Shown here in pieces: positions 210-31,372 of a DNA stretch of 64,000 nucleotides. This DNA is from Pocillopora damicornis (lineage: Eukaryota), in contig NW_020843860.1 in NCBI RefSeq assembly GCF_003704095.1, forward strand, positions 1-64,000, in the 5' to 3' direction. The notes under the pieces were generated by a model, which was not told the DNA's origin, did no database searches, and saw only the letters and a list, made by a program, of their open reading frames with translations. Within the stretch, counting starts at the first letter, position 1. Each line of letters opens with the position of its first letter. Position numbers and translations under genes: made by a program.

Positions 210-1863
210 ATGGCGGTTGTCGATACCGAAAATAAATCAGATTTAAGACAACTTTTCCAAAATATATCACCATACTTTACTCCAGAGGAATCAGAACATG
301 TTGTACTGTCATTTAAACAGAATTATGGGGGGAAATTCAACTCTCTAGACGATTGCGATCTGCTGAAGTGTTTTCATCTTCTTGAAGAGAATGGGTATGT
401 ATCTGAAAACAACCTCAAACTAATCGAAGACTTCGTTGCTTTGAAATCGAGAGGAGAAGAACTCATTAAGGACGCTATGAAAACTTTTAAGGCCTCTCGT
501 CCAGTAAAAGCTGATCCAGAGAAGAAATTGCAGGGACGGAACGATGAAATCACGAAAATCAACCGAAAACTGGCATCAAAAGATTCTGCAGCTTTAAACT
601 TGTTTGGATCGTCTGGTTTGGGAAAGACAAGACTTGCTAAGGAAGTTTGCTCACAATGGCGTGGAACATATCATGTCTTTGATCTTAGAGAAGCAAAGGA
701 TATGAGAGCGATTTATTACAACATTCTACATTCTCTCGATCTAGCTGTTCCAGTTGGTTACATTGAACTAAAGAATGTTGTGGCAAAAGTTCAAGAGAAA
801 ATAAGAGAGTTGCAGACGAAAAGGGAGGGACATGGTGTTCTGTTTATGCTGGATAACGTGGATCGATTTACCGCAGGACACGGAAAGGACGGAAAGAACT
901 TGAAAACAGCTTTTATACAATTTTTAGAAAAGCTTCTAGAAACCAAAGAAAAAGGGTCTCCCTTGAAACTTTTACTTACATCAAGGGCTCAGTTAAAAGA
1001 TTCCAAAAAGGTGGAAGATTTTGAAGTCAAGTCCCTGAAAAGATCTTTTTCGGAGAAAATCCTCTTTCCTAAGGGGATGAATGATGTCCAACCCCACCAG
1101 ATGGATAAATTTGTTAATACCACCAAAGGATCTCCCCTTTTTCTAGAATTACTGGATCCTATTTTGCGACAAGGACGGAAATCTGTTGATGAACTCATCG
1201 CAAGACTTGCACTCACTCCAAAGAAATCCAAAGTGGAGGAAGATGCCTCAGAGAAGCCATTCGATTTTGAGGACGATGGAGTAGACATGGGTCAGATATC
1301 GGTAGTGAGAGAAACATTCGACACACTTCCCACTGAAAGTTTGAAGGTATCTGCAGTAGTAATCTCCTTGTTTCATGGGCCTTTCTCTGTGCCAACAGCT
1401 GCCAAAGTTCTTGGTATTGACCAGTCAGAAGCTATTGCTCAGTTAGAGGGTCTTGCAGCCAGTCGAATCATTTTTGTAGTTGACAAGGAAGCAAAAGAAA
1501 GGAAGTATGACATCCATCCACTCTTACAGAAGTATGCTGACAGTATCAAGAGTCAGGAAAACTTTCTTGCTCTCTATCTGGAGGCAAAAGCGCGCTTTTA
1601 TGAACTCTTCATGTCCAGGATGAAGGAAATTGCCAAACTCATTGAGCCAGACTATGTCAGAGCATTCCATTTATTTGAGACAGACAGAGGAAACTATGAG
1701 TTCACTGTTGACATATCTTTGCAACCAAAATATTTCAGTGTTCCAGGTGAATTCCATGAATATACTTTGATTGCCTCCCTTTTTGATGCAATGCTAAATG
1801 AGAAGAAAATAATCAAGGTGTTTCATAACTGGGCTGAGAAGTGCCAAGATGATGGAAAGACAG
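210..1863 (+). CDS. Copy A exon 1: DED-like + NB-ARC ATPase + winged helix
   Basis: ORF 192..1925; ATG at 210; donor CAG|GTACAG at 1863/1864, same position as in the paralogues (..DDGKTG|). Confidence 0.9.
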
Positions 1864-4800
1864 GTACAGTACTTTATAATGAAGTTTTGGTCATGCAATT
1901 ATTAATTCTTTTAAAAATTTTATGAACTGTGATTTGTAGTTTATTCTTTATACACATATATCTATATATCTGCATCTATATATATATCATTCTACATCTG
2001 CTTATCTGTACATCAGTATATCTCCATACTGGTCTCTGAATAATTCTTAAGGTTCTTAAATGGAGAATTTGTTAAAAAATCAAGAGCTTCTTTAGTTGGG
2101 GATCATTTCCTTTATTCCTGTGACCTTGATGTTTATTTATGATTCATGGATAAAATTGNNNNNNNNNNNNNNNNNNNNNNNNNNNNNNNNNNNNNNNNNN
2201 NNNNNNNNNNNNNNNNNNNNNNNNNNNNNNNNNNNNNNNNNNNNNNNNNNNNNNNNNNNNNNNNNNNNNNNNNNNNNNNNNNNNNNNNNNNNNNNNNNNN
2301 NNNNNNNNNNNNNNNNNNNNNNNNNNNNNNNNNNNNNNNNNNNNNNNNNNNNNNNNNNNNNNNNNNNNNNNNNNNNNNNNNNNNNNNNNNNNNNNAAGAC
2401 TAGCTAAAAAATTGCTCTGAATATCCTCTCACATATCAACCCTTCAACTCCTAAAAGTGATTAATATCTAATTTCTCCTTACAATGTCACTCCTGAATCA
2501 ATCATGAAGGTTATGAGAATATATGAACTGATCACCAATTAAAGTAGCTCTTCATTGCTGACCAAATTCTCCCTGTCAGCACCTTAGGAAACGTATAGAG
2601 AACAGTGTGGAGAATATGGATACTGATGTTAAGGTAATTCAGTGTAAAGCGTTAATGACTTGAAGTCCTACAATTTAGTCTTTTGGAAAATTGTTCACTT
2701 TGGGAATCCACTTGCAACTGTTATTAAATGAAACATCTGACTGTTAATTCTTCTGCTCTTACAAAATTATAAGCTCCAATAAATATTTTTCATTTTTAAG
2801 TTGCAAAACTGTGGTAATAAGATTACATAATTGACTTGTTGTGTAACATTTTTAGGTTCTCTCATGCGAGCACAGTTGAAATGCCGGGAAGTAAAGCAAG
2901 TTCTTGATGTCCATGGAACAGAGAGAGCATTTGAGGTACTGATGACAGCTTTCAGTTCACTGGAGAAAGTCAACAACAAAACTAGTGATTATTTTATGCT
3001 CACCAAAGGACTCTATCTGTATTGTGAAGGTGAGATCCTTTGGAGAAATGGAGACTTTAAGAAAGCACTTGAATGTTTGAAGTCATCCTTGGAATTCTTT
3101 AAGGCACTGCCAGAGGAGCACACTGATCTTGCGAGGTGCTACAATGCTATTGGAAACTGCTATTCGAGTCTAAAACTACTTGAGAAGGCACTTGAGTTTT
3201 ACAACAAAGCATATATGACTCAAAAGAAAGTGGCAGGATCTGAGCATCACTTTGACATTCCAATTTACAAGAATCAAATTGGAACTGTTTATGTTGGTCT
3301 AGGAGATTACAAAAAGGCTACCAAGTGTTACAAAGATGCCTTGGGCCTTTTGAAGGAACTAAACCTTTTAGATTCGTGGGATGAAGCTCACTTTCTGAGA
3401 AATCTTGCTAATGCTTACATTCACAGAAAGGAGTATAAAAAAGCAACTGAACCCGCAGATAGGGCTTATAACATAAGGATGAAGATTCTCGAAAATCACC
3501 CACTAACTGTGCAAAGCATATACCAGAGAGCAGTGATTCTGTCATACTTGAATGAAGATGAGAGATCCTTGCAGCTCCTTCTTGAAGCATGGAAGATGGA
3601 GAAAGCACTTGATGCAGGAAACCACAGTCCAGTTTGGCGAGATATTATTGTTGGTGTCGAGACCTCATATGATAATCTAGGGAAAGGAAACCAGAAGAAA
3701 GGATTTCGAAAAGAAGCATTGAAATTTTGTGAACATCTCTGGGAAGAACGAAAAGGCTCAAAATTGTTTTGCTTTGATGATTTCGACAAAGAAGTAATTG
3801 ATACTATTTTGGAACTTCTTAGCAAGAAGAAAGGCAAATACATTGTTTACAAAGTGGAAAAGGAACAATTTCAGAAGATGTATAGTGTTAAGAAAGAAGA
3901 ATTTCAAGAAAAAGCTGACCAGACCCAAAGAATTCTACTGCACTCAGGTAAAAGCCAATGGCATTGCAAGTTATTCCTAAATTAGAGTGTTGTAGGCATT
4001 TTGCTGTTAACCCTTTATACCCTAACATCAGTCTGTATATTCTCCATAGTGTTTTTATACAAATCCTTAGGTGCTAACAAGGAGAATTTGTTTATCAATC
4101 CAGAAAATATTTTGTCAATGATCATTTCCTTCATTCTCATGACCTTATACTGTCTGAAGCAGGGTTTATATTGTTAGGAGAAATTAGCTCTTGGTCACTC
4201 TCAGAGGTTAAAGGATAAACCCCTTAACCCCTAAGAGTGGTTAGGAACTATTTCCTCCTATCAGTGTCACCCTTAAAACAATCATTGAGGTCATGAGAAT
4301 AAGGGATATGATCACCAACTAAAGAAGTTCTTAATTGTTAAACAAATTCTCTTTGTCAATACCATAGGAAATGTATACAGAATGTTATGGAGAAAATGTA
4401 AACTGATGTTAAGATGTAAAGAGTTAATAGCATTTGGTGGGAAATGCATTGTCCTAATGGTTAGTGTGCTGGACTCCAGGTCAAGAGATCATGGTTCAAG
4501 ACCTGGCTGATCTAGTTATTGTGTTGTGTTCTTGGACAAAATACTTTAGCCAATTAATTCCCAAGATCTCATCAATAATTCTCCTTACTGTCTCCCATAC
4601 AGTTCTTGTGATGTTGGTTTGGAGAATTTGGTATTGGATCATCTTACAATCCCCTAACTGATATTTTTTGTTATTCTCATCACTTGTCTGCTTGATATTG
4701 TTTTGATATTGTAAGGAGAAATTCTGTCTTGGTCACTCATGGGAGTTAAAGGGTTAAATTACTCTGTCAGTGCCTCTTGAGCCCCATTCAGGACTACAAA

Positions 4801-7800
4801 TAGATACTGGCAAATTTTTAGGCAAGCCTGCTGAAATGCTGGGGTGGTAAACTTTCAATAGACTGGCATCCCATCTAGGGGGAAGTAGTAATACTCCCAA
4901 TCACTTCATGCTCAGGAAACCAGGATAAACTCCAGCTGGATGAGCCACTTTGACTCTTGGACTGAGTCTCACAAACCCAAACTGACACACATGTTAAGTT
5001 TACAAAGCATACAAAGTATAAAGTTGCATTTACACACTTGGAATTGTAGAGACACAGAGGTAAATTAAGGGAGATTAATACTGGTAATAGGACCAAGTGG
5101 AGTCCAATTTGTCTGTTCTCAGACTAGTGATTAACAAAATTGGACAACTATGAAGGGGGAGTCCGATTTGTCAATCATGAGTATGATTACCAACAGAATT
5201 GGATGACACGAAGTCCAGTTACCAATTAATCATGACTGTTTGAATTTCCAAAAAAACAAACAAACAAAAACAAATACACTTAGGACAAACATCTCCAAAA
5301 TTGACAATGTTTAAAGTAAAAAATTCTTCCATTTAGGAAGTTCCCCAGTTTCTTTTTTCAGGGTAAGTAGTTGTTTCTATGGTTATGGTGATCAATTTTG
5401 TGATTGGTGGATTTAGCTGAGGGAGTGGACTTTAGTTAGTATGATTGACTGCTTCAACTGTCTGCTAATGCACCAATCATGTTTGAGGCATGCAGTTTTG
5501 GTAGGAAATGCAATTTTTGCAATGCTATTTAAGGAAAACAACTATTTTTAGCCTCTGAGAGGGAAAAGGTGCCTGATGCCAAATCAGCAAAAGGAGATGA
5601 TGCAGAGGAGGAGGAAGAAGTTGTGGTGGAGTTGTCCGATGAAGAAGATTCAAAGCCAAACCCTAGAGACAGCAAAAAGATTGTGGTCAGGAGGTAATTC
5701 ATTTTTCTATCTATGATTTTTCTTGTTGTGCTGGGCTCTTACAGAACCTTCAAAGGGGTTGTAAAGCAAAGGCTAATGCTCTAAATGTCTATTTGCTCCT
5801 CAGAGATGAGATAACAGACAAGGGAGACACATGGAATCTACCGGAGGCTGGTGCATTTATCACCTTTTCTCCAGGATTTCTGAAAGAACCCTTGTGGGTC
5901 TCTTGTTCCATGTGGAGTCCTAGATCCCTCTCTCCTCCCATAGGCAGTAATGAGCTCTTGGTGAGTAATTTGATTGAACTATCTTATGAAGGCCCACCAA
6001 CTCTAGAGTCTGGGGAAGCTGCTACAGGATGCATAACCATGGGTTTGTTGCACAGTGCCTCTGATTTCAAGGGATATGAAGTAGTTATTAAGAAACTGGT
6101 TGACCAAGAAAACAATGAATGGGAAGATTTGGAAACAAGAATCATGTGGAATTCAGCAGGTATTTAAACTCAAGTTATTAAAATCATTTATCTACCCGAC
6201 TGGATATTTGTTATTATCCCAGCTATAAATCCAAAGGAAATTTTCTCCTCATACAGCTGTAGGTGCAATAATGATGATTATAATATGGCAAGGTAGTCCT
6301 GAGGTAAATCTTAGTGTTCTGATTGGTTCTTACTTGGTCAGTATTTTGCCATACAGAGTGTTTCCATGGAAACAGTTGTAAGCTCTGTATTTTTTTTTAG
6401 TTAAAGTAAGCAAATTCAAAATGGAAAAGTTTGGTCTGATTGCCATATGATAAACTACTTACTATGGGAACCTTGTTTTCAAAATACTGGATTTATATAG
6501 AGCAAAACTTGTCTTTATATATTGCAGACAAATTCATTTCCACAGTACAAGTGTAGATCCCCAATTGAGACTTATATTCCAGGTGTGCAGTTATCAAAAG
6601 CCAATTCATTTCTTTGATTGAAAGGTTAAGAGTGAGAATGCATCTGACAGCAAAGCTACAGATCGTTTTTTATTTTTTTAGAGAGTCGATGTAATACCCC
6701 TGTCTCTCTTTCCAAAAGGTATAGGTGACTTTTCTGGCAGGAGCTCAGGGGAGGGCCTAGTTTTTAATATGGAATCCCGCTAGGTACCCTTCATGCTGAA
6801 GAGTCAACTAAATTTACTAAATAAATGAATTTTTCATATTCTTTCTTGAAGAAATGAATCCAGCTGTTATGGACTGCCCATATGCTGAAGCGACTTGCTC
6901 TGGAATCTGCTTTACCTCCTTTGCGGTTATTTGGCGCCTGAAGTCTTTTGTCTTTTGGAAGACAAAGAATTTGAGCCCCGAGTTTACTTGCACAGTGCCA
7001 GACTATCCAAATGTCTGTGTTTCAATCCCATGGAATTCTGTTCCTGACAACACAGACTTCTCTTTAACTCTAAAGGTAACTAAACTTAGTGTAGGTTTCA
7101 AATAAGTCAAACCATAGCCACCTATAATGTCGGTGTCATAAATATTTGTTGTTCCTTCTGGATCACAGGTACAGGAGGCACCAAGCACCGATGGCAGAGT
7201 TGGAATCTTGTTGGGTCCGGTTCTTCACATTTCGTGCTCACATGGAATAACGCTCTTGGAGCCAGCAAAAATCAACCTTCCTCTTGCACTTTTTAAAGGT
7301 GATAGAGAATTGTTGGACATGCACTCAGGTCAGTGGAGGATATTTCACTTTCAGCAGGAATGGAGAGATATCACAGATCGGTTGGAGATGTCAGTTGCTA
7401 TTACAGATGGAATAGTGAGATTCAAAGTGAAAACTTTCTGCAGGTAAGTAAAGGTTCTCATTGGTTAAAATTTAAATTACATTAAAAATGTTCGTTGATC
7501 CCGGAAGTGTTCGTGATGTTATCACTTATAGACCAAGTAATGGTCAACCTCATGCATACTGTACTACTACGACTATGCTGAGAAAGACGAAAACGATAGC
7601 GTTAACGACCACGACGTCAACAAGGACGAGAATGACGACCATGACATGGACGAGGGCATGGACGAAGGCAAGGACAAAGAAAAATTGATAACATGGACAA
7701 GGAGGAGGGACGAGGAAGAGGAGGATGAAGAGGACGAGGACAAGGAGGGAGACGAGGAAGAGGAGGAGGAGGAGGAGGGGAGGAGGAGGAGGGGGACAAG

Positions 7801-9316
7801 GAAAGGGACGAGGAGAAGATGACGAGGACGAGGAGGGGGACAAGGAAAAGGGCCGAGGAGGAGTAGGAGTAGGGGGAGGACGAGGATGAGGACGAGGACT
7901 CAAACTGGGACGACAACTGTGACATTGACAACGAAAGTGACTATCACCTTGACGGTGAAGATTCCTTAACAATAATAATGAAAGTGTCAATGATAGCGAC
8001 ACATACAACAGCAGTAACGATGACTTTGGCATTGTCACCGATAGTAGCCATAGCAATCTATTTTCACTATTTTCCCTACGGTAGTAAGTTATTGACGAAC
8101 AGATTACTTTCCAAGCTATCGGTAATTTAAGAAACTAACCACCTGTGGAGTGCTTGTCTTTAATGTTAGTAAAAGAAGATGTTTTTTCGATGATTTTTAA
8201 AATGATGCCTTATCGTTTTCTCTCAGATTTTTGCCTTTGTGGGTGGTTGCTAATCTTGCTGGTGTTGATGCTGGTGATGTCTCTGATCTGGCCAGGAGAT
8301 CGATGAAACAACGAGCTGGGTTTTTAGCTTGCATGTGTCGAGATGTTGTACCTGAAAGATACTTGCTGAAGCTATTTTGTTTCCCACTTCATTTGAAATC
8401 CAAAGTGAATAAGAATATGGTAAAGTTGAATTACGATGTGATCTTTCAAGGAGATGGAAACTCGAAGAAACCTCTATTCAACGAAGACGAAACGTCTGTT
8501 GCTCTTTCAAAAGGACTGAAGGTACACGAAGGAGGAGATACTGACAACCTCTCCTTAACGTAAGTGTTTGTTGCTCATATCATGATTACTACCACTTGGT
8601 GCTGTTTTCTGTTTTCTATTTCATATTATATAGGGTCTCAAGCAGGAAACGTCTGCTGTAAAATGTTGTTCCAGACCCCCACAGCAAATCTGCACTCCAA
8701 TGATTCCCTTCTTAATCTTTGAATTTAACCTTAGACAAAATCGTTTAGGAGTACCACCGCCAAATGAAGTAAGATAAAGAGATGCTAGGCAATTAGGATA
8801 TAGAGATTACGTTTAGAACACAGGTAGAAAGACCAGCAAAATATTCAGAATTTATCGGGAATCAATTATGACAACATCACTAATGGTCCGTCGGGTGGAA
8901 ATCCCATCAAACAGCTGTTGGTGTCATTCTGTTAGAAGCAGCAACTTACCTGAGTAGACTTACGGTAATGGATTTTAGTTAAAAATGCGCCACAAAGAGA
9001 TACAAAAAGTGGGCATAAATTACCAGAGCAACTCGCAAGGCATAAGCTCAGTTTGTTTTTCTGCAGACAGATTTCCTAATTAATTTTGGTCGCAAGAGTC
9101 TCCGTTGGATTGCTTTTACATTAACGGAGAATGTATTATTTTCTTTCTTGTGTCAGGTTTTATGATGATGGAGAAGACCAAAATGATGTGTTCGTCACTA
9201 TTGAAGATAAAAGTAACATGTCAGTAGACTTCTTGAAACGGCTTAACGCCGAGGATAGGACAGACCATGAATTGTTATGTAAAGTTCGCATTATTATTCG
9301 AGGATCTCCATCGCAG
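210..9316 (+). CDS. NLR-like receptor copy A (multi-exon): DED-like - NB-ARC/STAND - TPR - acidic linker - ZU5-ZU5-UPA (PIDD-like); probably continues into the GT4 exon at ~9813-11040
   Basis: Phase-compatible GT/AG exons read by hand: 210-1863, 2856-3947, 5552-5693, 5804-6159, 6852-7075, 7169-7443, 8227-8559, 9157-9316. Motifs: DED-like LxxLEENGYVSENNLKLIE, Walker A GSSGLGKT, Walker B FMLDNVD, sensor-1 LLLTSR, GxP (KGSPL), MHD-like YDIHPLL, TPRs (LARCYNAIGNCY), ZU5 (LGPVLHIS..EPAKINLPL). Confidence 0.85.
2856..3947 (+). CDS. Copy A exon 2: TPR repeat region (short form)
   Basis: ORF 2831..3985; acceptor TTTAG|, donor CAG|GTAAAA; repeated TPR consensus (A..Y..IG..Y...G.Y.KA..CY..AL). Confidence 0.9.
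4007..4428. mobile_element. Two adjacent TTAA-MITE copies in opposite orientation
   Basis: TTAACCCTTTA..GGTTAAAGGATAAA followed directly by CCCCTTAACCC..GTAAAGAGTTAA, same internal sequence as the 37817 element. Confidence 0.65.
4445..4950 (+). mobile_element. tRNA-headed SINE interrupted by a TTAA-MITE (4547-4757)
   Basis: A-box-like CCTAATGGTTAG and B-box GGTTCAAGACC; the SINE body (TGTGTTGTGTTCTTGG..TACTTT) resumes after the MITE (ACTCTGTCAGTGCCTCT..CATCCCATCTAGGGGG). Confidence 0.6.
7560..7910. repeat. Purine-rich (GAC/GAG)n low-complexity tract in an intron of copy A
   Basis: Degenerate ACG/GAG triplet runs; lies between the donor at 7443 and the acceptor at 8227. Confidence 0.85.
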
Positions 9317-9812
9317 GTATTTCTTCTTGTTTTTTAGCTGCATTGATCCGGCTTCTCAATTTGCAGTAGAAAGGCATAGCAACGAATGTAAAATATGCCG
9401 GTTTAACACAGTCGTCATCTTAATTAATTAGCGGCAACCATGATTAGAAAAGCTACTTCTAAGAAGTTAGGTTGTTTTCCTCACTCATCCCCTACTCGAT
9501 CACAAAGGTCATCCGTACGTAAGTCCTTTGGTACAGATTTGACGTTGCCAAAATGACACACCAAGGGCTTAAACTTCNNNNNNNNNNNNNNNNNNNNNNN
9601 NNNNNNNNNNNNNNNNNNNNNNNNNNNNNNNNNNNNNNNNNNNNNNNNNNNNNNNNNNNNNNNNNNNNNNNNNNNNNNNNNNNNNNNNNNNNNNNNNNNN
9701 NNNNNNNNNNNNNNNNNNNNNNNNNNNNNNNNNNNNNNNNNNNNNNNNNNNNNNNNNNNNNNNNNNNNNNNNNNNNNNNNNNNNNNNNNNNNNNNNNNNN
9801 NNNNNNNNNNNG

Positions 9813-11040
9813 TCTTCAGATATAACTGACACGTCACAAAGCGAACGAGGAACTCGAGTTAATCCAAGAGGGCCCGACTCAAAATTGAAAGTCTCTCTTT
9901 TGGCAAGTGAGTGGAGCTCATCAATGGGAGGATTGTCCACCATTAACAGACACCTCGCCATTCAATTGGGCAGGCACGCCCAAGTGGAAGTCACTTTCCT
10001 TGTCCCACCCTCTAGCTGCTCTGAAGAAGAGATAGGATTAGCACGAAGCTGCAATGTTGCCATCAGGGAAGTACAGAGTCGTACAGGTTACGACCTCCTT
10101 GACTTCCTGATAACTCCGCCGGAAGACCTGGAAATTGATGTAGTAGTGGGTCATGGTCAGAAGCTTGGTAAACAAGCCCAGTTTATCACAAGATCACACG
10201 GTTGCAAGTGGATTCAGGTAGTTCATACTTCACCTGAGGATCTAGGAATGCACAAAAAGTATCCCAAGGCGATTTCAAAGGGTGGGAAGAAGAAAACAAT
10301 CGAAGTAGAGTTGTGTAAACAAGCAGATGCTGTTGTCGCAATTGGACCTACTTTAAAGGAGACCTTCTCAGCTTATCTTCGCCCCTGTGGCAAACAGCAA
10401 GACATAATTGAATTGACTCCAGGCATCTTCAGTGAATTTTCGACCATAAAACATGCTACAGTGGACAATAAAAACTTTAGGGTGTTAATCTTTGGTCGGA
10501 GTGATCGAGAGGACTTTGCAGTTAAAGGATACGATATAGCTTCCAAGGCAATAGCCGAACTGAGCGACCCTACTTACCGCCTGATCTTTGTGGGTGCACC
10601 TGACGGAGAAGAAGAGGAGATTAAAGAATATTTGCTTCAGAATGGAATTCCAGATGGCCAGCTAACTGTGAGAAAGTTTGTACAAAGCAAAGAGGAATTG
10701 GAAGAATTGTTTTGTGAGGTGGATCTGTGCATCATGCCATCAAGAGTGGAAGGGTTTGGCTTAACGGCCCTGGAGGCTATGTCAGCTGGTCTTCCCATTC
10801 TTGTCAGTGGCTGTTCTGGATTTGGAGAAGCACTTTGCACTGTGCTACTAGGCGAAGAAGTTGTTGTCAGTAAATCTGAGGATCCCAAGGAATGGGCAAA
10901 GGCAATCGCCGGTGTCCGCCAGAAGGAAAGATTACAGCGACTTCGAGAGATTCAACAGATACGGTGTTCCTATGAAGAGAAGTATGACTGGGAAAAACAG
11001 TGTGAAATTCTCGTGAAGAAGATGTGGGACATACGTTATG
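9813..11040 (+). CDS. GT-B fold family 4 (Glycos_transf_1-like) glycosyltransferase exon
   Basis: ORF 9885..11075; SEWSSSMGGLST N-terminal motif, KGYD, and EX7E donor-binding motif PSRVEGFGLTALEAMSAGLPIL; donor G|GTAAGT at 11040. The frame is open back to the gap edge. Confidence 0.9.
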
Positions 11041-13412
11041 GTAAGTCTAAACTTTGTGAAAATACTAATTTCTGACTCTGATACGGAGAATACGAAAGAT
11101 GCGAAAGTTTGAGCTTTTTGTTGGAGTAAGGAAAAATTGGTAACTGTCTCATCACGTTCATGGGACAGTACAGAGTAGAGTACAGAGTAGAGTACAGTTC
11201 TGAGTTCTCAACGAGGAATGGAACCTCAGACTTTGGAATCCTTACTCCGATTCTGTACTGACAGCTGACCTCCAAGGAGCTTTACTGTGAGTTAGGCTGT
11301 TATAAAAACACATAATTTGCCATCTTTCCAATCCTGGTTATCAATTGATATCAATTTAGTTGAGGAATACACTTATTATCTCCTGAAACATTGCTGATCC
11401 TAGCAGTACGCAGGGCGCCTGTCACGTAAAATGTAGCTCAGTAGTACAACATCGCAGCACGGAATCTAAAGGTCTGAGGTTTCGATTCCTCGTGGGAGAA
11501 CCAGATTTCTCTCCTTTGTTCCACGTTTGTGTGAAGACGAATACAGTCGAACCTGCATTAAGCGGTCGGTTGTCAAAGTCCCGAAATTTGTACTCCTTTA
11601 ATTACCGTAATTTTCACCTCTGTTAAACGGTCACCTCTATTAAGCGATCGTGGTTGCCCTTTACTGAGTCCCAACGGCCTGTTTGTATTTTACCCCGCCT
11701 GGACTGAGTCAGCATTTGAACTTTGAGTACTCAATGCTGGCATAAATTTGAGTTAAGATCTGAAAGCTTGAAAAGAAAGTATATTCAGCTTAACTCTTTC
11801 TGTCTTCCATTTGATGATTGAACGCTCCAAAAGGAAATGGGTAAAAATTATCCTCAACCGGCTTTTGAACAGAGAAATGTAGAAACCTAGATTAAAATTT
11901 AACCCTGGGTTAGCGCTAATCGGCCCTCCAAGAACTGGGCCCTGAAGTGTTAGCCAGCTTACTGTCCGCAAGGGAATTTTTCTCACGGTTTTCAAAAGAA
12001 GACCGCCTCAAATGCTGGCCCATCCACTAACAGGAATTTTGTCTCGTCCTTGTTGCAGGAATTGAGTCACTTGCAAATAGAAGAAATTGAGGGAAAAAAA
12101 AGGACAAAACATGCACAAAAATAACTTTGGAATTACGCGTGGACATTATCCTAGTGGAGTACAATAGCTAAGGAAATTGTCAGATATATCGCCATTCACC
12201 CTTGATCAAGCAGTGCCTTCATAGGTGAGTTTTAGCTTGGGGCTCTCGCTTGCTCTCCTCCTTTCATTGTTTAGTTGTTCATTACATAAATATCGTGTCT
12301 TAAATCTGGTACTTTTTAAACCACGTTTACGTCATACATAAGTATATCCGATTTCACAACTTACATCACAAAAAATAAAAATAAAAAAGGCAAATATGCA
12401 CTGTAAACATGCCTATTTGGATTTCGTCCGGTCATCTCATCAACTTGACCTGGGGGATAAAGCAGGTTCTTTTGCGCTAATTTCCATTGCATAATAGGTA
12501 GAGGTAGGATAGAATGCTTAATGTGTCAATCTAACTTGTGTGCACTTACCTTTTTGTCTTTTTATTTTCGCCATAGATCCTTACCATGACAGTAGAGCCG
12601 ACCTTTAACGTGACAATAAACAACTCAGATCAAATTGTTATCAAAGAAACCTCTGTGGCTCAAGATTCTTTAAGGCTTTGTGGTGCTGTTCACTGTTTTG
12701 GATGACAGTGCTCGATCCTATGAATGGAAATATTTCTGGAACAGCGATGAAACAGCTTAGAAATTCCCTTAAACTTGCAAACTCTTCAACCCTAGTTTAT
12801 TTCACCTGCATAGATTTCTCGGAGATATTTTCCATCGTATTCCGGCTATTCTTTTTTTGGCCTCGATTAAGCTGAAATTTAGTTTAAATGTCACTTCTGA
12901 AAATAAAAAAATCAAGAACATAAAATCATGTTTCTGTGACATGTGTGTTTCGTTAATTTTGCTTCCGCAGTATGCCTTCTCTCTTTGCTTTTTCTGATAG
13001 CAAATGGCGATTTTACTTAGTGCTTATTTCTTGCCGTTCACCTGCCTAGTCCCATCATCAATTTTGCTCGATCTGTACGATCGTGCCTCCAATATCATTG
13101 AGCCTGCTATTAGCTCATGTATCGCTTGCGGTCAGCAGCTACAAACTCGTCGTTTCTCCCCTTTCCTCCAATCTTGACTACACTCTAAGCTTCAGTGGTC
13201 GCAAAGCCTAGTTTTCGTGCCGTCGGATAACTCTCTCGGGGATTATATCTCAGGAGCAACAGAAGAGCGTTTTAAATTTGAGTCGGCTCTTTTGGTAAAA
13301 ATAATAATCATAACAAGCATCTTGGGAACGCCTAGGTTCAATTCCTCCCTACAAGACAAGGACAATGATTAAAAACAGGTTTTAACATCAATGTATCTTT
13401 CAAGTTGGTGGT
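11041..13412. repeat. Segmental duplicate (inverted) of ~14620-17180; third partial copy at 34194-35410
   Basis: Long reverse-complement matches, e.g. 13330-13412 vs 14620-14720 and 12541-12960 vs 15090-15480 and 34200-34620. Confidence 0.9.
12577..12608 (+). CDS. Putative short terminal exon after the GT exon ((D)PYHDSRADL*)
   Basis: Strong pyrimidine tract plus CATAG acceptor, phase 1 matching the GT-exon donor; conserved in the inverted copy at 15413-15444. Confidence 0.45.
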
Positions 13413-13512
13413 NNNNNNNNNNNNNNNNNNNNNNNNNNNNNNNNNNNNNNNNNNNNNNNNNNNNNNNNNNNNNNNNNNNNNNNNNNNNNNNNNNNNNNNN
13501 NNNNNNNNNNNN

Positions 13513-14197
13513 AGTTTTTCCCTTCTTTACCTTTTCCTGCGGTAAAGAGGTCTACATTGTCCAGCATAAATAGAACGGCATCTTTCTCACCTTTAAACTC
13601 TTCAACCTTCTCTAGAACTTTGGTAACAACATAATTTTGATCAACACGACCAACTGGGATTACTAGTTCGAGAGAATGCAGCATGTTGTAATAGATCGCT
13701 TTCATATCCTTTGCTTCTCGTAAATCAAAAACACGATAATTCCCTCGCCACTGTGAGCAAACTTCAATGGCAAGCTTTGTCTTTCCTACACCAGACGACC
13801 CAAACAAGTTTAGTACTCCGGTGTCTTTCGATTCCAGTTTTTTGTTAATTATTTTGATTTCTTCACTCCGTCCTTCTAACTCCTTCTCTGGATCACCTTT
13901 ACCCAAACGTGAGGCCTTGAAACGATCTATATCTTTCTTAATGAGCTTCTCCTGGTCAGATTTTGTAGCAACGAAGTCTTCGATTAGGTTAAGTTTGTTG
14001 TCAGACACATAGCCGTGCTTTTCAAGAAGTTGAAAACATTTCATCAGATCGTGACTATCCAGCAGATCAAATTTCCCTCCATAATTCTTTTTTAAAGTTT
14101 TCACGATACTTTCTGATTCTACAGCTTTAAATTTTGGAGAAATGTCTTTGAAAAGTTGTTGTAAACCTGGCACACTTTCGATACCAACTGCCGCCAT
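13513..14197 (-). CDS. NLR-like copy B, 5' part of exon 1 (DED-like + Walker A/B), truncated by gap
   Basis: ORF 13400..14218; MAAVGIES.., GSSGVGKT, FMLDNVD; runs into the 100-N gap. Confidence 0.9.
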
Positions 14198-17180
14198 CTT
14201 TGATAACTTTTTTTTCAACCACGATACTGCTGACCGCTCCGTATGTCCCCACGCGTGTACAGTGACAAGTCACGCGATCTCATCACGCATACCCCAAAAT
14301 TTAAGTAAGTACAACCATTCAGGCTCGGTAGGTCAATCTCTTTTGGTCTTTTAAACCTTGATTTATTCACCCATTTATTCCTTTTTTTTTTCTTTTTTGT
14401 AAACTTATATCATACATTTCACTTTTGTGCTACGATAACTAGGCCATCATTTACTTAGGAAAGATCTGAATAACATGGGACGCACCGTAACCAAAACTTC
14501 CTCTGGTCTGTTCGCGTGCGGCTTAGCACAAACTTTAAGCTTGCTCTAGCTTATTCATCTCAAACTGGGTGTAAAACTAACGTCGACTGCCTTTTTAATT
14601 CTTTTTTCTACTCTTTTAAACCATCAACTTGAAAGATACATTGATGTTAAAACCTGTTTTTAATCATTGTCCTGACTCCACTTCCTCTTATAGGGAGGAA
14701 TTGAACCGAGGCGTTCCCAAGATGCTTGTTATGATTATTATTTTTACCAAAAGAGCCGACTCAAATTTAAAACGCTCTTCTGTTGCTCCAGGGATATAAT
14801 CCCCGAGAGAGTTATCCGATGGCACGAAAACTAGGCTTTGCGACCACTGAAGCTTAGAGTGTAGTCAAGATTGGAGGAAAGGGGAGAAACTTCATTACAG
14901 GTAAGACGAGTTTGTAGCTGCTGGCCGCAAGCGATACATGAGCTAATAGCAGGCTCAATGATATTGGAGGCATGATCGTACAGATCGAGCACAAGTGATG
15001 GTGGGACTGGGCAGGTGAACGGCAAGAAATAAGCACTAGGCAAAATCGCCATTTGCTATCAGAAAAGGTAAAGAGAGAAAAATTAACGAAACACACATGT
15101 CATGGAAACATGATTTTATGTTCTTGATTTTTCTTATTTTCAGAAATGACATTTAAACTAAATTTCAGCTTAATCGAGGCCAAAAAAAAATAGCCGGAAT
15201 ACGATGGAAAATATCTCCGAGAAATCTATGCAGATGAAATAAACTAGGGTTGAAGAGTTTGCAAGTTTAAGGGAATTACGAAGCTGTTTCATCGCTGTTC
15301 CAGAAATATTTCCATTCATAGGGTCGAGCACTGTCATCCAAAAAGCCTTGACGAATTTTGAGCCACAGAGGTTTCTTTGATAACACTTTGATCTGAGTTG
15401 TTTATTGTCACGTTAAAGGTTGGCTCTACTGTCATGGTAAGGATCTATAGCGAAAATAAGAGGACAAAAAGCTAAGTGCACACAACTTAGATTGACACAT
15501 TAAGCATTATATCCTACCTCTACCAATTATGCAGTGAATATCACCGAAAAAGCACCTGCTTTATCTCCCAGGTCAAGTTGATGAGATGACCGGAACAAAT
15601 CCGAATAGGCATGTTTACAGCTAATCTTTGCCTTTTTTATTTCTATTTTTTGAGTGATACAAGCCGTGAAATCGGAAATACTTATGTATGACGCAGACGT
15701 GGTTAATAAGTACTAGATTTAAGACATGATATTGATGTAATGGACAACTATACAATCAAAGGAAGAGAGCAAACGAGAGCCCTACGTTAAAACTCACCTA
15801 TGAAGGTACTGCGGGAACGAGGGTAAACGGCAATATATCTGGTAATTTCCTTAGCTATTGTACTCTGCTAGGATAACGTCCACGCGTAATTCCAAAGTTA
15901 TTTTTGTGCGTGTTTTGGCCTTTTTTCCTCAGTTTCTTCTATTTGCAAGTAACTCAATTTCCTGCAACTAGGACAAGACAAAATTCCTTAGTTAGTGAAT
16001 GGACCAGCATTTGAGGCGGTCTTCTTTTGAAGACTGTGAGGAAAACTCCTATGTGCGGACAGGAAGCTGGCTAACACTTCAGGGCCCAGTTGTTCGAAGG
16101 CCGATTAGCGCTAACCAAGGGCTAAATTTTAATCTAGGTTTCTACATTTCTCTGTTCAAAAGCCGGTTGAGGATACTTTTCCCCATTTGTCTTTGGAGCA
16201 TTCAATCATCAATCATCATTGAAGACAGAAGCTTTCAGATCTTAACTCAAATTTATGCCAGCATTGAGCACTCAAAGTTCAAAGACTCGCTCAAAAATTC
16301 TACCAACATTGATTTCGGAAGATAAATAAGGATAAACTTATACGTGATAGATTATTCCTAATTTTATCTGAGTGGTCTCACTTTAAATGACCGTTCAGTC
16401 CAGGTTAGGTACAATACAAACAGGCCGTTGGGACTCAATAAAGGGTGACCACAACCGCTTAATACAGGTGAACGTTTTACAGAGGTGGAGTACAAATTTC
16501 GGGACTTTGACAACCGACCGCTTAATACAGGTTCGACTGTATTCGTCTTCACACAAGCGTGGAACAAAGGAGAGAAATCTGGTTCTCCCACGAGGAATTG
16601 AAACCCCAGACCTTTAGATTCCGTGCTGCGATGTTGTACTACTACTGAGCTACATTTTAAGGAACGAATCTTGTGAGTTAAGCCGTTACTTAAATGTTTT
16701 TACGTGACAGGCAACCTGCGTACTGCTAAGATCAGCAATGCTTGAAGAGATAATAAGTGTATTCCTCAACTAAATTGATATCAATCGATAACCAGGATCA
16801 GAAAGATGACAAATTATGTGTTTGGTGGTGGAATAGAGAGAGTTGTCACATATCAATTTGATAAAAGCCTAACTCACAGTAAAGCTCCTCGGAGCTCAGC
16901 TGTCAGTACAGAATCGGAGCAAGGATTCCAAAGTCTGAGGTTTTATTCCTCGTTGAGGACTCAGAACTGTACTCTTTGCCCCATGATCGTGATGAGACAG
17001 TTACCAATTTTTCCTTACTCCAACAAAAAGCTCAAACTTCCGCATCTTTCGTATTCTCCGTATCATGTGATGTTAATGTACTTGTAGTGGTGGAACACGT
17101 TTGATGTGGCCTCCAGCGGTACAAAAACACTCTTTCATAGTCCGAAATTAGTATTTTCACAACGTTTAGAATATTCTTAC

Positions 17181-17856
17181 CAGAACTTATATCCCACATC
17201 TTCTTCACGAGAATTTCACACTGTTTTTCCCNNNNNNNNNNNNNNNNNNNNNNNNNNNNNNNNNNNNNNNNNNNNNNNNNNNNNNNNNNNNNNNNNNNNN
17301 NNNNNNNNNNNNNNNNNNNNNNNNNNNNNNNNNNNNNNNNNNNNNNNNNNNNNNNNNNNNNNNNNNNNNNNNNNNNNNNNNNNNNNNNNNNNNNNNNNNN
17401 NNNNNNNNNNNNNNNNNNNNNNNNNNNNNNNNNNNNNNNNNNNNNNNNNNNNNNNNNNNNNNNNNNNNNNNNNNNNNNNNNNNNNNNNNNNNNNNNNNNN
17501 NNNNNNNNNNNNNNNNNNNNNNNNNNNNNNNNNNNNNNNNNNNNNNNNNNNNNNNNNNNNNNNNNNNNNNNNNNNNNNNNNNNNNNNNNNNNNNNNNNNN
17601 NNNNNNNNNNNNNNNNNNNNNNNNNNNNNNNNNNNNNNNNNNNNNNNNNNNNNNNNNNNNNNNNNNNNNNNNNNNNNNNNNNNNNNNNNNNNNNNNNNNN
17701 NNNNNNNNNNNNNNCAGGTGCACCCACAAAGATCAGGCGGTAAGTAGTGTCGCTCAGTTCGGCTATTGCCTTGGAAGCTATATCGTATCCCTTAACTTCA
17801 AGGTCCTCTCGATCACTCCGACCAAAGATTAACACCCTAAAGTTTTTATTGTCCAC
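17181..17856 (-). CDS. Second GT4 glycosyltransferase exon (partial, interrupted by gaps)
   Basis: VDNKNFRVLIFGRSDREDLEVKGYD.. and EKQCEILVKKMWDISSG| are nearly identical to the 9813-11040 exon; donor at 17181. Confidence 0.85.
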
Positions 17857-17957
17857 NNNNNNNNNNNNNNNNNNNNNNNNNNNNNNNNNNNNNNNNNNNN
17901 NNNNNNNNNNNNNNNNNNNNNNNNNNNNNNNNNNNNNNNNNNNNNNNNNNNNNNNNG

Positions 17958-20900
17958 GTCCCAAAAGGATGGATGATTTTGAAGTGGGTTCGCTAGAGAG
18001 GATTTCTTCAGAGAAACTAATTTTTCCTAAGGGATTGACTAATGTTAAACGAGAGCAGAAGGATAATTTAATGAGCATCACTAAAGGATTCCCTCTATTT
18101 CTAAAAGGACTAGGAGCTATTATGCGACAAGAACGAAAATCTCCAGAAGAACTTATTGCAGAAATTGTGCATGCTTTAAAAAAAATGAAAGTGGAGCTGG
18201 ATGTGAGTGGAAAGCTTGCTGGTTTTGATGAAGAAGGAGTGGATATCAATCAGATGTCAGCAGTCAGTTTAATGTTTGAGACACTTTCCACAGAAAGGTT
18301 AAAGTTATCTGCAGTAGTGGTTTCCTTGTTTCATGGGCCTTTCTCCGTGGCAACAGCTGCCAAAGTTCTTGATGTTGACCCCTCAGAGGCCACTGTTCAA
18401 CTAGAGGGTCTTGTAGCCAGCCAAATAATTTCTGTTGTTGATGAAGAAGCAAAAGAAAGGAAGTATGATATTCACCCTCTCTTATGGAAGTATGCTGACA
18501 GTATCAAGAATCATGAAGATTTTCTTGCTCCTTACATGGAGGCAAAAGCACGCTTTTATGAACTTTTTATGTCCAGGATGGAGAAAATTGCCAAACTGAT
18601 TGAGCCAGAATATGTCAGAGCATTCCACTTGTTTGAGAAAGACAGAGGAAACTATGAGTTTACTGTTGAGGTCTCCTTACAACCAGAGTATTTCATTGTT
18701 CGAGGTGAATTCCATGAGATTGCTTTGATTGCATCTCTTTTCACTGCAATGCTGAATCATAAAAAAATAATCAAGGTGTTTCATTCCTGGGCTGAGATGT
18801 GTGAAGATGATGGAAAAACAGGTGAGGGGCAGTGAAACTTTTCATGTGATATCGATATTGTCCAAATCTCATATTTAGCTTAACCTCATTGTCTGGGGAG
18901 ACATGGAAGATGTTTCTTTGAAACAGCTTACATGTAGTTTTAACTTATTGCAATAGTTACCTTATTTTATTATATGGCAAGATAGTCCTGAGGTAAATCT
19001 GAGTATTCTGATTGGATCTTAATTGGTTGAGATTTTGCCATATGGACCATTTCTTCAGAAACAGTTATAAGCCATGTATTTTTATTTGCAAAGGCATTAA
19101 ACTCAAAATAAAAAAGTTTGGTCCAAGTTCTGTATAATAAATTACCTACAGTACTGACCTTGCTTGCTTGCTTGAGCCATACTGGTCAACATTGTTCCCT
19201 GTCATTTAAGTACAGAAGGAGCTGTGCTCGGTCCATACCATCAATACTGGCCAATATACCTCAGTATGGCCCTTATGCTCAGTTAGTATGAATTTATTAT
19301 CTCTTTTGTAATTAGAGGCAGTATTATTCTCTCATGGGAATTCCTGTTATATAAACACCTTTCTATATATTTTTGCTTTTGTCTGAACCCCATCATCAGC
19401 TCTCCTGTCCATCATTAAATCCCATGTTCTTAAGTTTAGACATTTAGTTTATCATGTAACCTTGTGGCTTTCTGCCATCTATGATGATTAATGTAATGAC
19501 ACATGGCCGTTTAAACTGTTATTGCAGTTTGGCAATTGGAACAGTGGAGGAGGTCTATATGCAAGTAATTAAAATTTGACAGAGCCACTTTTGGATTACA
19601 TAATGTGCACAATTATCCCACCAAAATGTCAGACTTGACCTATCTGGAATAGCTAACTAGATTTTGGTGCTAAAGCTACGAGTCGCTGAAATTTGAGTGA
19701 CTACCTTATTTTATACCTTGCAAACCAAACTCGAGAAAAATCTTTAGTGAGGAGGCTATCCAGGTTCTGATGACCTTTAAGCTAATATATTGATTAAGGT
19801 GGCTCTGTCATGGCAATTGCAGATATTTTATGTCTCAGTCTTTTGTTACTTGTACTTTGCTGTTGATACAGTCAATTGGAATTTTTGTGTTGTGCAGCTC
19901 TGGGGTAATTTTGCCACTAATTTTTAAGCCAGCCTGCACTTTGCAATCAGTCAAGCTGAAATTATTCACCAATTTACTCCCAGAAGTCCTATTACCATCA
20001 CTTATGTAATTCCACACGGGAACTGGGGAGAAGCTACTTAGGAGGGGCTCTGAGGATAAGACAGATAACAAAAATAGTAAAAAAAGAAAGAAAAAAAGAA
20101 AGAAAGAAAGAAAAACAAAAAAAGTGAAATTTTTAAACCACTTCTTGGGGAACTGTTATTGAAAACAAAAAAAGATATGTCTTGTGATAATTAATTTACA
20201 CTTGGTCATTTATAGATACTGAGCACACTTCATCAGCAGTGATATCTGTTTATTAGTTTGATTCTTCATCTTTGTACAGGTTCTCTTTGCCGAGCGCAGT
20301 TAAAGTCCTGGGAAGCCAGGGAAGTTTCAGATGTTGATGGAACAGAGAGAGGATTTGAAACATTGAGGGAAGCTCTGAATTCACTGGAGAAAGTTGAAGA
20401 TCAAAGTAGTGAATCCTTTATGCTCACCAAGGGGCTTTACTTGCAAGCTGAAGGTGAAATCCTTTGGAGAAACAGAGACTATAAAAAAGCACTGGCAAGT
20501 CTGGAGTTGTCCTTAACTTTCTCTGAACCACTGCTAAAGGAGCATACTGATCTTGCAAGGTGCTACAATGCTATTGGAAACAGCTTTTTTCACCTGGACC
20601 AACCCAGGAAAGCACTTGAGTTCTATGAAAAAGCCTACAAAATGCAAGAGAAATTAGGATCAGAGAATCACTTTGACATGCCAATGTACAAGAATCAGAT
20701 TGGAACTGCGTATGAAGGCCTTAAAGATTATGGAAAGGCGGTTCAATGGTACAGAGATGCACTAAGTCTTTTGGAGGATCTTAAACTTTTAGGTGATTTG
20801 GACGAGGCACTCTTCTCAAGAAATCTTGCTAATGCACTCATGTTTCAAGACAAATATAAAGAGGCAATTGAACCTTCAGAGAGGGCTTACAACATAAGGA

Positions 20901-30270: not shown

Positions 30271-31372
30271 CTACAAGCAATGGAGAAACAAAATTCAGTC
30301 AGTTGGACGAGAAAGCGAGCCAACAATAAATTGTGGCCAGCGTAAAATCCATTTCTAAAACAAGATTATTTGTTTTTATCAGCTGAGTTGCTGATGTAAA
30401 TTGCCCACTATAAAGAGATATTGAGCTGACTTTTCGAGCGTTAGCCCCTCTTCAGAACTAATATTAATCATATGAAATTTTCATTTATTTAAGACTTCAC
30501 GTTGCCATGCGTTGAGTGGTAAGAGAAGTTTTCCTCACTGTTTTCCTCGAACTTCGCCCTTGGTCGCATCTCGGAACAGATAATGTCCGCGGACAAATAT
30601 CCGTGCACGTTTTCGCGCCAAATGAAGGCTACTGTTTATATATAGCGACAGAAAAAAAGAACAATTTTGGGCTTAACCAATTTAATAACTGGAAAAAGAA
30701 AACGAACTAAAAAACATTTTTTTTTTTGACTCAAAGAACCACAAAAAATATTTTTTGCCCAACTCAAAGAACCATGTAACTAGCCGNNNNNNNNNNNNNN
30801 NNNNNNNNNNNNNNNNNNNNNNNNNNNNNNNNNNNNNNNNNNNNNNNNNNNNNNNNNNNNNNNNNNNNNNNNNNNNNNNNNNNNNNGTTGATTTCTTAAC
30901 TTGTCTTTTCCAAGAATTTACAGTTCATGTTTTAATGCTTCTGCAATACCAAAAAGCCCCTTAACTCAAACAGTATGAAATCGGCCCTTTCAAAAGGGTC
31001 CGTATGGTGTTAAAATGAACAATAATAACCTACCAAGGCTTTTCCTTTGTTTGTTTGTTTTTGTCGGTTTCGTGTTGTTGTGTTTAGTGTTTTTTTACTT
31101 GAATTTGATATGGACACGATCCACCTAATAGATAACTTGCGCAACAAACATTTCTGAGTTTGATGACTTATCATTCTAACATTACTTACACAGTACAAAA
31201 AGCTTCCAGCAATAACACCATAATATACATACTAGAGAAGAGTGTCGACCTACCAAGTTACATATGAAAATAAAAGAGCCGAAATGAGGAAGTTTCAAGG
31301 CATTATCAAGTGCAGTGACCCTCATTTAAACTGGTAACTTGTTCTGAATTTTCATCCTTGGCTTATTTTCAG

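Follow-up and report, generated by a model that had tools for sequence, protein, structure and literature searches.

The question that this locus raises is where a coral sensor gene ends, and with what. The first 64,000 nucleotides of contig NW_020843860.1 of Pocillopora damicornis (NCBI RefSeq assembly GCF_003704095.1, positions 1 to 64,000 of the forward strand), which we will call the window, form a tandem, partly inverted array of STAND-NTPase/TPR/ZU5 genes. In one of them, copy A, the last UPA-like exon is followed, on the far side of an assembly gap, by an exon for a glycosyltransferase (GT) of the GT4 type, so that one has to ask whether this enzyme belongs to the same gene and, if it does, what it could be doing at the end of an NLR-like protein. 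Our answer, to which we give a probability of roughly 0.72, is that copy A is a multi-exon gene of the order DED-NB-ARC-TPR-ZU5-ZU5-UPA-GT4, in which GT4 comes last and is the predicted enzymatic effector.

The evidence that carries this answer comes from RNA, in the form of Logan contigs from four runs of four studies (X1, X5, X9 and X10), which were aligned to 8100-14099. Three joints are present in all four runs, namely 8559->9157 (GT..AG), 9317->9812, with exactly one unplaced letter, and the joint from the end of the GT exon to 12060, and a fourth, 12219->12572 (GT..AG), is found in three of them (X5, X9 and X10). In particular, a 1918-nucleotide (nt) contig, record 1 of X1, covers 8224-8559, 9157-9317, 9812-11041 and 12060-12224 with 2 mismatches in total, none in either UPA exon and both in the GT exon. 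On the genome, the second UPA-like exon (9157-9316) and the 5' edge of the GT exon lie on the same strand about 495 nt apart, the length of the gap being an estimate. After the phase-0 end CAG|GT of the former, two letters inside the gap and base 9812 make up one codon, and the GT frame continues from 9813; the RNA letter count across the gap thus amounts to one whole codon, so that the reading frame is continuous. This frame is deduced from the letter count alone. On the other side, the loose contig end before 8224 maps exactly to 7411-7440, and a canonical 7443|8227 junction thus leads out of the second ZU5-like exon. The in-frame splice link between ZU5, UPA and GT4 is confirmed, and runs ..7443 -> 8227-8559 -> 9157-9316 -> GT4 -> stop exon -> 3' untranslated region (UTR) exon. 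No second 100% copy of the UPA exons was found in the genome, and the spliced form is therefore not a retrocopy. The initial annotation had proposed that the GT4 exon was splice-linked to the last UPA-like exon and had called for junction evidence from 9316 into it; this joint is now seen at the RNA level, in frame, in the contigs of all four runs.

Judged from its sequence, what is joined in this way is a complete GT4-conflict (GT-B, family 4) glycosyltransferase, whose activity is predicted. The stop-free translation of 9813-11041 (+) matches PF20706, GT4-conflict, at 1.2e-80 and 271.8 bits (cut-off 26), over positions 2-383 of the 385 of the profile. Going upstream, this frame stays open as far as the edge of the gap at 9812, and there is no in-frame ATG ahead of the domain in the sequence from 9812 onward, the first Met being inside the domain; the exon had been described at the outset as intact, on the same strand, about 500 bp after the last UPA-like exon and with no upstream ATG, and this description stands. 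Among solved structures, the best alignment is to GT-B enzymes, with glycogen synthase (2bis) first and MshA (3c4q) and WaaG (2iv7) also matched. The GR..KG and E-x7-E motifs are kept, as FGRSDRE..VKG and PSRVEGFGLTALEAM, which align with their equivalents in glycogen synthase 2bis. The nucleotide-sugar binding and catalytic-type motifs are thus intact, and nothing argues for a dead enzyme. The family counts 86 matches, and at least 40 full-length single-exon copies of GT4-conflict are found in the genome. A partly gapped copy lies in the window itself, on the minus strand, at 17181-17231 and 17715-17856, split by a 483-N gap and with its upstream exons outside the assembled sequence. It is 97% identical to the GT exon of copy A over 10461-10602 and 94% over 10990-11040, and another chassis copy could have it as its C-terminal exon.

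Beyond the GT exon, with its phase-1 end on G|GTAAGT, a stop codon comes 2 codons into the next exon with the AAA of the RNA, 4 codons in with the upstream acceptor of X9 and X10, and 11 codons in with the AA of the reference. A stop only 2-11 codons away makes GT the C-terminal domain and leaves 12059-12219 and 12572-12936 as essentially 3' UTR. The GT exon is not found upstream of an NTPase exon and spliced to it: its donor joins the stop-codon exon in four of four runs. All of these carry one extra A relative to the reference at 12059-12061 (AAA vs AA), which shifts the stop from 11 to 2 codons, and the shorter reference probably reflects either an assembly error of one base or a private deletion. 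The paralogous copies at 15921-15988 and 35057-35126 are also one letter longer at this place (GGAAATT and GGGAATT, against GGAATT in the reference). The acceptor of X9 and X10 lies 6 nt upstream of that of X1 and X5 (12051-12058), where the reference reads TG and the inverted paralogue AG (CTAG|TTGCAGG), which suggests an allelic or species difference that makes a NAGNAG-like alternative acceptor. As for the surrounding DNA, 11046-13412 matches 17170-14620 (-) and 11745-12965 matches 35408-34194 (-), as inverted repeats of 78-91% identity; the 2.4 kb that lie 3' of the GT exon, both 3' UTR exons included, have two further occurrences in the window. The RNA depth at 11500-12100, and the numerous loose ends there, suggest that part of these 2.4 kb is a dispersed repeat, and a tRNA scan of 11000-13400, where a tRNA-derived repeat was suspected, found none.

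Upstream of the splice-linked part, the chassis of copy A is read from its exons (Table 1) and from their likeness to those of another member of the array, copy E. The first large exon, 210-1922, scores 24.9 bits for NB-ARC (cut-off 23.5), with AAA_22 and NACHT-like matches besides in Pfam, and its 210-509 part matches DED PF01335 at an E value of 0.0015, under the family cut-off. This exon is 65% identical to that of copy E, and the TPR exon is 54% identical to residues 30-393 of the TPR exon of copy E. The first ZU5-like exon is 40% identical (5e-27) to 42420-42809 of copy E, which Pfam recognizes as ZU5 at 5.4e-7. Further down, the paralogous copies of the second UPA exon share the ending ..Q|GT. 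Pfam searches were run exon by exon, and transcript-derived relatives (L033 and P0158) stand in for the multi-exon fold. A model of the ZU5b-UPA region of such a relative, with a predicted local distance difference test score (pLDDT) of 59, was matched by Foldseek to the ankyrin-B ZU5-ZU5-UPA-death domain structure 4d8o with a probability of 0.97, and structures of this type were its only matches at E<=1e-3. This fold match gives modest support to the UPA-like label that we put on 8227-9316. From the order on one strand, the open frames and an Acropora listing that we will come to below, we infer that the transcript would start at the DED-like/NB-ARC exon, 210-1922, and pass through the TPR exon.

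Table 1. Features of copy A, of the 3' part of copy E and of the minus-strand GT4 copy, in window coordinates
Feature	Position	Strand	Basis or remark
DED-like region and STAND (NB-ARC/AP-ATPase) P-loop NTPase, first large exon of copy A	210..1922	+	Pfam
TPR exon, copy A	2831..3982	+	Open frame, splice ends approximate; TPR_12 at 1.2e-26
First ZU5-like exon, copy A	5667..6164	+	Open-frame bounds; likeness to copy E exon
'Mid' and second ZU5-like exons, copy A	6821..7443	+	Ends TFC; RNA contig loose end; canonical 7443|8227 junction readable
UPA-like exon 1, copy A	8227..8559	+	RNA joint 8559->9157; eight paralogous exons in genome
UPA-like exon 2, copy A	9157..9316	+	RNA contigs; phase-0 end CAG|GT
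Assembly gap	9578..9811	.	Contains 3' part of intron, acceptor and first two letters of GT exon
GT4-conflict glycosyltransferase exon	9812..11040	+	Complete GT-B domain; phase-1 end G|GTAAGT
Stop-bearing exon, remainder 3' UTR	12059..12219	+	Joints 11040/41->12060, four runs
3' UTR exon beyond UTR intron	12572..12936	+	Joint 12219->12572, GT..AG, in X5, X9 and X10
Second, partly gapped GT4 exon copy	17181..17856	-	Own G|GTAAGA donor; diverged downstream copy 17170-14620
UPA-like exons, copy E	44548-44855, 45870-46023	+	Read from sequence; second ends in phase 0
Helical exon, copy E	46468-46771	+	Phase-0 start, phase-1 end G|GTAAGT; 101 codons

How does this architecture compare with what is already known? 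GT4 is a predicted effector of bacterial conflict systems, where it is often C-terminal to STAND NTPases (Kaur, Iyer, Burroughs, Aravind, eLife 2021, PMC8195603). According to the same study, it was laterally transferred into metazoans and has more than 500 paralogues in Acropora digitifera, which are lineage-specific and very variable in architecture. Its Fig. 6 source data list the Acropora digitifera protein XP_015759356.1 as 'APATPase+TPR+ZU5+ZU5+GT4', and the catalogue further includes, from the same species, XP_015748402.1 ('ZU5+ZU5+GT4') and XP_015774318.1 ('PNPase+TPR+ZU5+ZU5+GT4'), and besides these 'RVT+DEATH+ZU5+ZU5+GT4', the amphioxus '...STAND+LRRs+Death+GT4' and the bacterial 'STAND+TPR+GT4' and NACHT+TPR+GT4, e.g. 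HCS09332.1 and KWK82218.1 (PMC8195603). Thus, both a C-terminal GT4 after AP-ATPase+TPR+ZU5+ZU5 and the proposal that it is an effector are already published, and the domain order is not new. Proteins annotated as Glycosyl_transferase,NACHT,LRR have also been listed in corals (Additional file 16 of Noel et al. 2023, PMC10236652). In our search of protein representatives, the coral relatives have GT4 mostly N-terminal or stand-alone. The initial annotation held that coral GT-NLR fusions are generally N-terminal, which is right as a tendency, but the C-terminal position and the effector idea that it set against this rule were in print (PMC8195603).

The same fusion is found in other transcripts. 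Nine open reading frames of transcript contigs (the P0023 cluster, P0158 included; 746-815 aa) read mid-ZU5b-UPA1-UPA2-GT4 in a single frame and end 5 residues after the GT. We also found bacterial-type proteins with STAND, TPR and a C-terminal GT4 (P0110, P0118 and P0149), at 32-37% identity in the GT. One further Acropora digitifera model, isoform X4 of LOC107354065 (P0167), has ZU5 at 126-202, GT4 at 457-819, NACHT at 912-1077 and TPR at 1462-1565; what it represents is probably the 3' end of a tandem gene run together with the 5' part of its neighbour.

Compared with Acropora XP_015759356.1, copy A would have the same order of STAND NTPase, TPR, two ZU5 and C-terminal GT4, and belongs to the same large coral GT4 expansion, but it comes from another coral family, and its ZU5-UPA-GT4 junctions are seen in RNA whereas those of the Acropora protein come from computed gene models. 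By listed architecture, rather than by direct alignment, copy A adds to the Acropora entries a DED-like N-terminus and a TFC at the ZU5/UPA junction. With the bacterial STAND/NACHT+TPR+GT4 proteins it would share the P-loop STAND NTPase, the TPRs and a GT4-conflict in the C-terminal effector position, but these proteins have neither ZU5-UPA nor a death-fold domain and are single open reading frames, unlike the spliced exons of copy A. The coral GT-NACHT-LRR proteins have this GT family fused to a STAND NTPase, but there the GT is N-terminal to NACHT and comes with LRRs, while in copy A it is C-terminal, after NB-ARC, TPR, ZU5 and UPA. With the ZU5-ZU5-UPA-death domain supramodule of ankyrin-B (4d8o), UNC5 and PIDD1, the shared feature would be two ZU5 followed by UPA, a layout in which the paralogous loci on contigs C1129 and C2360 and the PIDD-like protein P0162 keep a death domain after UPA; in copy A, a 400-residue enzyme replaces this death domain and HFS reads TFC. 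Finally, the FIIND-CARD part of NLRP1/CARD8 also places ZU5-UPA ahead of a C-terminal output domain in an NLR-type protein, which hints that a fragment of UPA plus output might be released as one way of acting, but the motif differs and copy A has an enzyme instead of CARD, so that the likeness is in layout only.

As far as can be told from sequence, GT4 then occupies in copy A the slot in which ankyrin, UNC5, PIDD and the nearest paralogues carry a death domain after ZU5-ZU5-UPA. Is this slot one in which modules are swapped? The initial annotation thought so from copies A and E, which would share a sensor chassis and differ in the output, and it had placed a different helical exon of about 100 aa at the equivalent position of copy E. 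This exon is there, with its 101 codons at 46468-46771. It has no Pfam match and no relative elsewhere in the genome; its helices come from a single-sequence AlphaFold model of low confidence (pLDDT 57, four helices), for which Foldseek against the PDB gave nothing at E<=0.001 and recognition in the ESM Atlas stayed under threshold; these results speak neither for nor against a death fold or CARD. The two copies also share the layout of this region: phase 0 both at the end of the second UPA exon and at the start of the last module, and a phase-1 end on G|GTAAGT for the latter. Flanked by a phase-0 intron on the 5' side and a phase-1 intron on the 3' side, in A as in E, the last module therefore behaves as an exchangeable exon cassette. 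However, the identity between A and E, which is 65% in the NTPase, 54% in TPR and 40% in the first ZU5, is 28% in the second ZU5, and the UPA exons have no detectable similarity (BLASTP E 0.16), those of the E type being confined, within the genome, to this window. Because the UPA exons are no longer detectably similar, A and E represent an old divergence and not a clean swap of the last exon.

The variation of the module is better seen elsewhere in the genome. The nearest paralogue of the UPA exons of copy A is on contig C1129 (45% and 39% identity), and an exon that Pfam identifies as Death lies 2.5-2.7 kb downstream of the UPA exons at C1129:972966-973166 and C2360:19718-19954, on the same strand, a link of strand and order only. 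The PIDD-like protein P0162 of Stylophora has a C-terminal Death domain. At two other loci, on C1529 and C1088, UPA is followed by a GT4 exon on the same strand, and both copies of the second UPA exon end ..Q|GT. In a tree of 28 GT4 domains, the GT of copy A falls in a clade with a Shimodaira-Hasegawa-like approximate likelihood ratio (SH-aLRT) support of 99, together with those of C1776 and C2788, which come before OTU exons, of C1653, after LRR-Roc-COR, and of C1664, in a tandem GT array, and the other UPA-linked GTs (P0023 and C1529) fall outside it. A topology that unites the UPA-linked GTs in one clade is rejected by the approximately unbiased (AU) test, with p = 0.00084 if the two rows whose context is unknown are left free; the group had been named after the tree was seen. 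The GT tree is at odds with the relationships of the chassis, and GT4 exons have therefore moved between chassis types. Among these contexts, C1776:90811-100810 (L013) and C2788:56300-66299 (L016) have GT4 and then exons for OTU cysteine proteases, and C1653:152700-162699 (L015) has LRR, Roc and COR-A exons and then GT4, i.e. a ROCO/DAPK-like chassis with a GT4 tail. It is thus supported, by exon order and phylogeny, that the copy A-type chassis may carry either a death domain or GT4. Of the shared chassis with a swapped output that had been proposed, the variation in the last module has been borne out by the Death exons of C1129 and C2360, by the GT4 exons of C1529 and C1088 and by the GT tree, and the clean swap between A and E has not.

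This architecture suggests how the protein could work. The STAND NTPase with its TPRs would sense a trigger and oligomerise, and the C-terminal GT4, as an enzymatic effector, would then move a sugar from a nucleoside diphosphate (NDP)-sugar to a target in either the invader or the host, which is the role proposed for it in PMC8195603; the ZU5-UPA module may govern the release of GT4. The junction between ZU5 and UPA is of particular interest for this last step. The HFS (or SF|S) of PIDD and FIIND is absent from it in copy A, which reads ..KVKTFC|RF, and P0023 reads KTFC|RFW; HFS is found in copy E and in those at 32558 and 29923. With TFC in place of HFS, an autocleavage of the PIDD/FIIND type cannot therefore be assumed for copy A. 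It may be that, when in one lineage of this chassis the GT4 exon replaced the death domain at the conserved phase-0 intron, HFS became TFC and self-cleavage became cysteine-based, freeing UPA-GT4 upon activation, but we hold this to be a long shot; TFC is kept in a relative with only 55% identity. If it were true, an NLR-like sensor would act through a glycosyltransferase set free to modify molecules of the host or of the invader, and not through death-fold polymerisation, much like an inflammasome whose output is enzymatic.

Other explanations of copy A have to be weighed together with this one. The 5' edge of the GT4 exon lies in unread sequence and many GT4 paralogues are stand-alone or N-terminal, so that the exon might be a gene apart, with a start and a promoter of its own within the gap. 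But four of four RNA runs join 9316 to it, in frame and with two exon letters in the gap, and no in-frame ATG precedes the domain; nor is the scenario that the initial annotation had named against itself, a stop or polyA after 9316 and a separate promoter and ATG for the GT in the gap, seen in the RNA contigs. A minor isoform of this sort is still compatible with the contigs, but as an account of the locus we find the independent gene very improbable. It is still harder to believe that the RNA joints are assembly chimeras between paralogues, even though the family is large (86 matches) and the contigs of X9 and X10 are 2-3% off the window, since the joints coincide exactly with GT..AG exon ends, leave the frame intact and are found again in each of four studies, and since the X1 contig matches both UPA exons without a mismatch and the GT exon with 2.

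The two explanations that remain are unlikely, but they carry more weight. One is that ZU5-ZU5-UPA-GT4 is a transcription unit of its own, whose start would be in the intron that precedes the first ZU5 exon, with NB-ARC/TPR as a separate, shorter gene. The RNA contigs do end within the ZU5 region, L033, a related transcript contig, opens with intron-like sequence immediately ahead of the first ZU5 exon, its called open reading frame starting from an internal Met, and the 'ZU5+ZU5+GT4' models of 1030 aa exist in Acropora. Short contigs and partial gene models would, however, give the same picture; XP_015759356.1 is catalogued with APATPase and TPR ahead of ZU5+ZU5+GT4, copy E and other copies of the window have the identical exon order on one strand, and no structure of a stop plus UTR is seen after the TPR exon. 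The other, to which we give about the same weight, keeps the gene whole and denies GT4 the output: it would bind a ligand or a sugar as a sensor, serve as an integrated decoy or have a regulatory, self-modifying role, and signalling would pass through the DED-like N-terminus. Such an N-terminus is present, and Apaf-1-type STAND proteins signal via an N-terminal death-fold domain, their C-terminal parts being the ones that sense. On the other side stand the intact catalytic-type motifs, the expansion of the family to at least 40 intact copies and the position of GT4, which is that of effector or adaptor domains (the death domain here, many effectors in bacterial STAND and AP-GTPase proteins).

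What weighs against our own reading of copy A, as one gene with GT4 as its effector, can be gathered here. The N-terminal DED-like domain could be the real signalling output, and the effector role of the metazoan GT4-conflict domains is a predicted one. The contigs extend only about 625 nt upstream of 8224, and no RNA joins the NB-ARC/TPR exons to the ZU5 exons. Moreover, Logan contigs are assemblies, which tell of presence and neither of abundance nor of isoform share, and the acceptor of the GT exon is hidden inside the N gap. The ZU5, 'mid' and UPA exons of copy A have no Pfam match, the first ZU5 exon of copy E being the only one that scored, and the fold support for the ZU5/UPA part of copy A comes from the pLDDT-59 model of a relative and not from copy A. 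Finally, the last exon junction of copy A, 12219|12572, comes about 155 nt after the stop codon, an arrangement that in vertebrates would target a transcript to nonsense-mediated decay.

Two irregularities of the scaffold should be kept in mind by anyone reading the rest of the array. Between the N gaps 13413-13512 and 17857-17956, the piece 13513-17856 has, at 13513-14269 of the minus strand, the N-terminal half of an NTPase exon, and the matching C-terminal half is on the plus strand just past the next gap, at 17957-18832. This piece is probably mis-oriented; flipped, it would read from the other GT exon through its downstream region to the DED/NTPase exon of the next tandem copy. Further on, near-identical second ZU5 exons, 32558-32941 (+) and 29923-30270 (-), and near-identical E-type UPA exons, 33451-33747 (+) and 29054-29347 (-), are opposed around the gap 30787-30886, as either another inverted duplicate or a mis-oriented contig.

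The known picture of the modularity of coral immune genes is left unchanged by this locus. What it brings is transcript-level proof that a glycosyltransferase of the bacterial GT4 'conflict' type is the C-terminal module of a coral NLR-like/PIDD-like gene, in the slot of the death domain, an architecture that had rested on computed gene models, which tandem arrays make unreliable, as with P0167. It also provides, with the UPA-GT4 part of about 600 residues, a defined construct for the first biochemical test of the GT4 domains that have expanded in corals.

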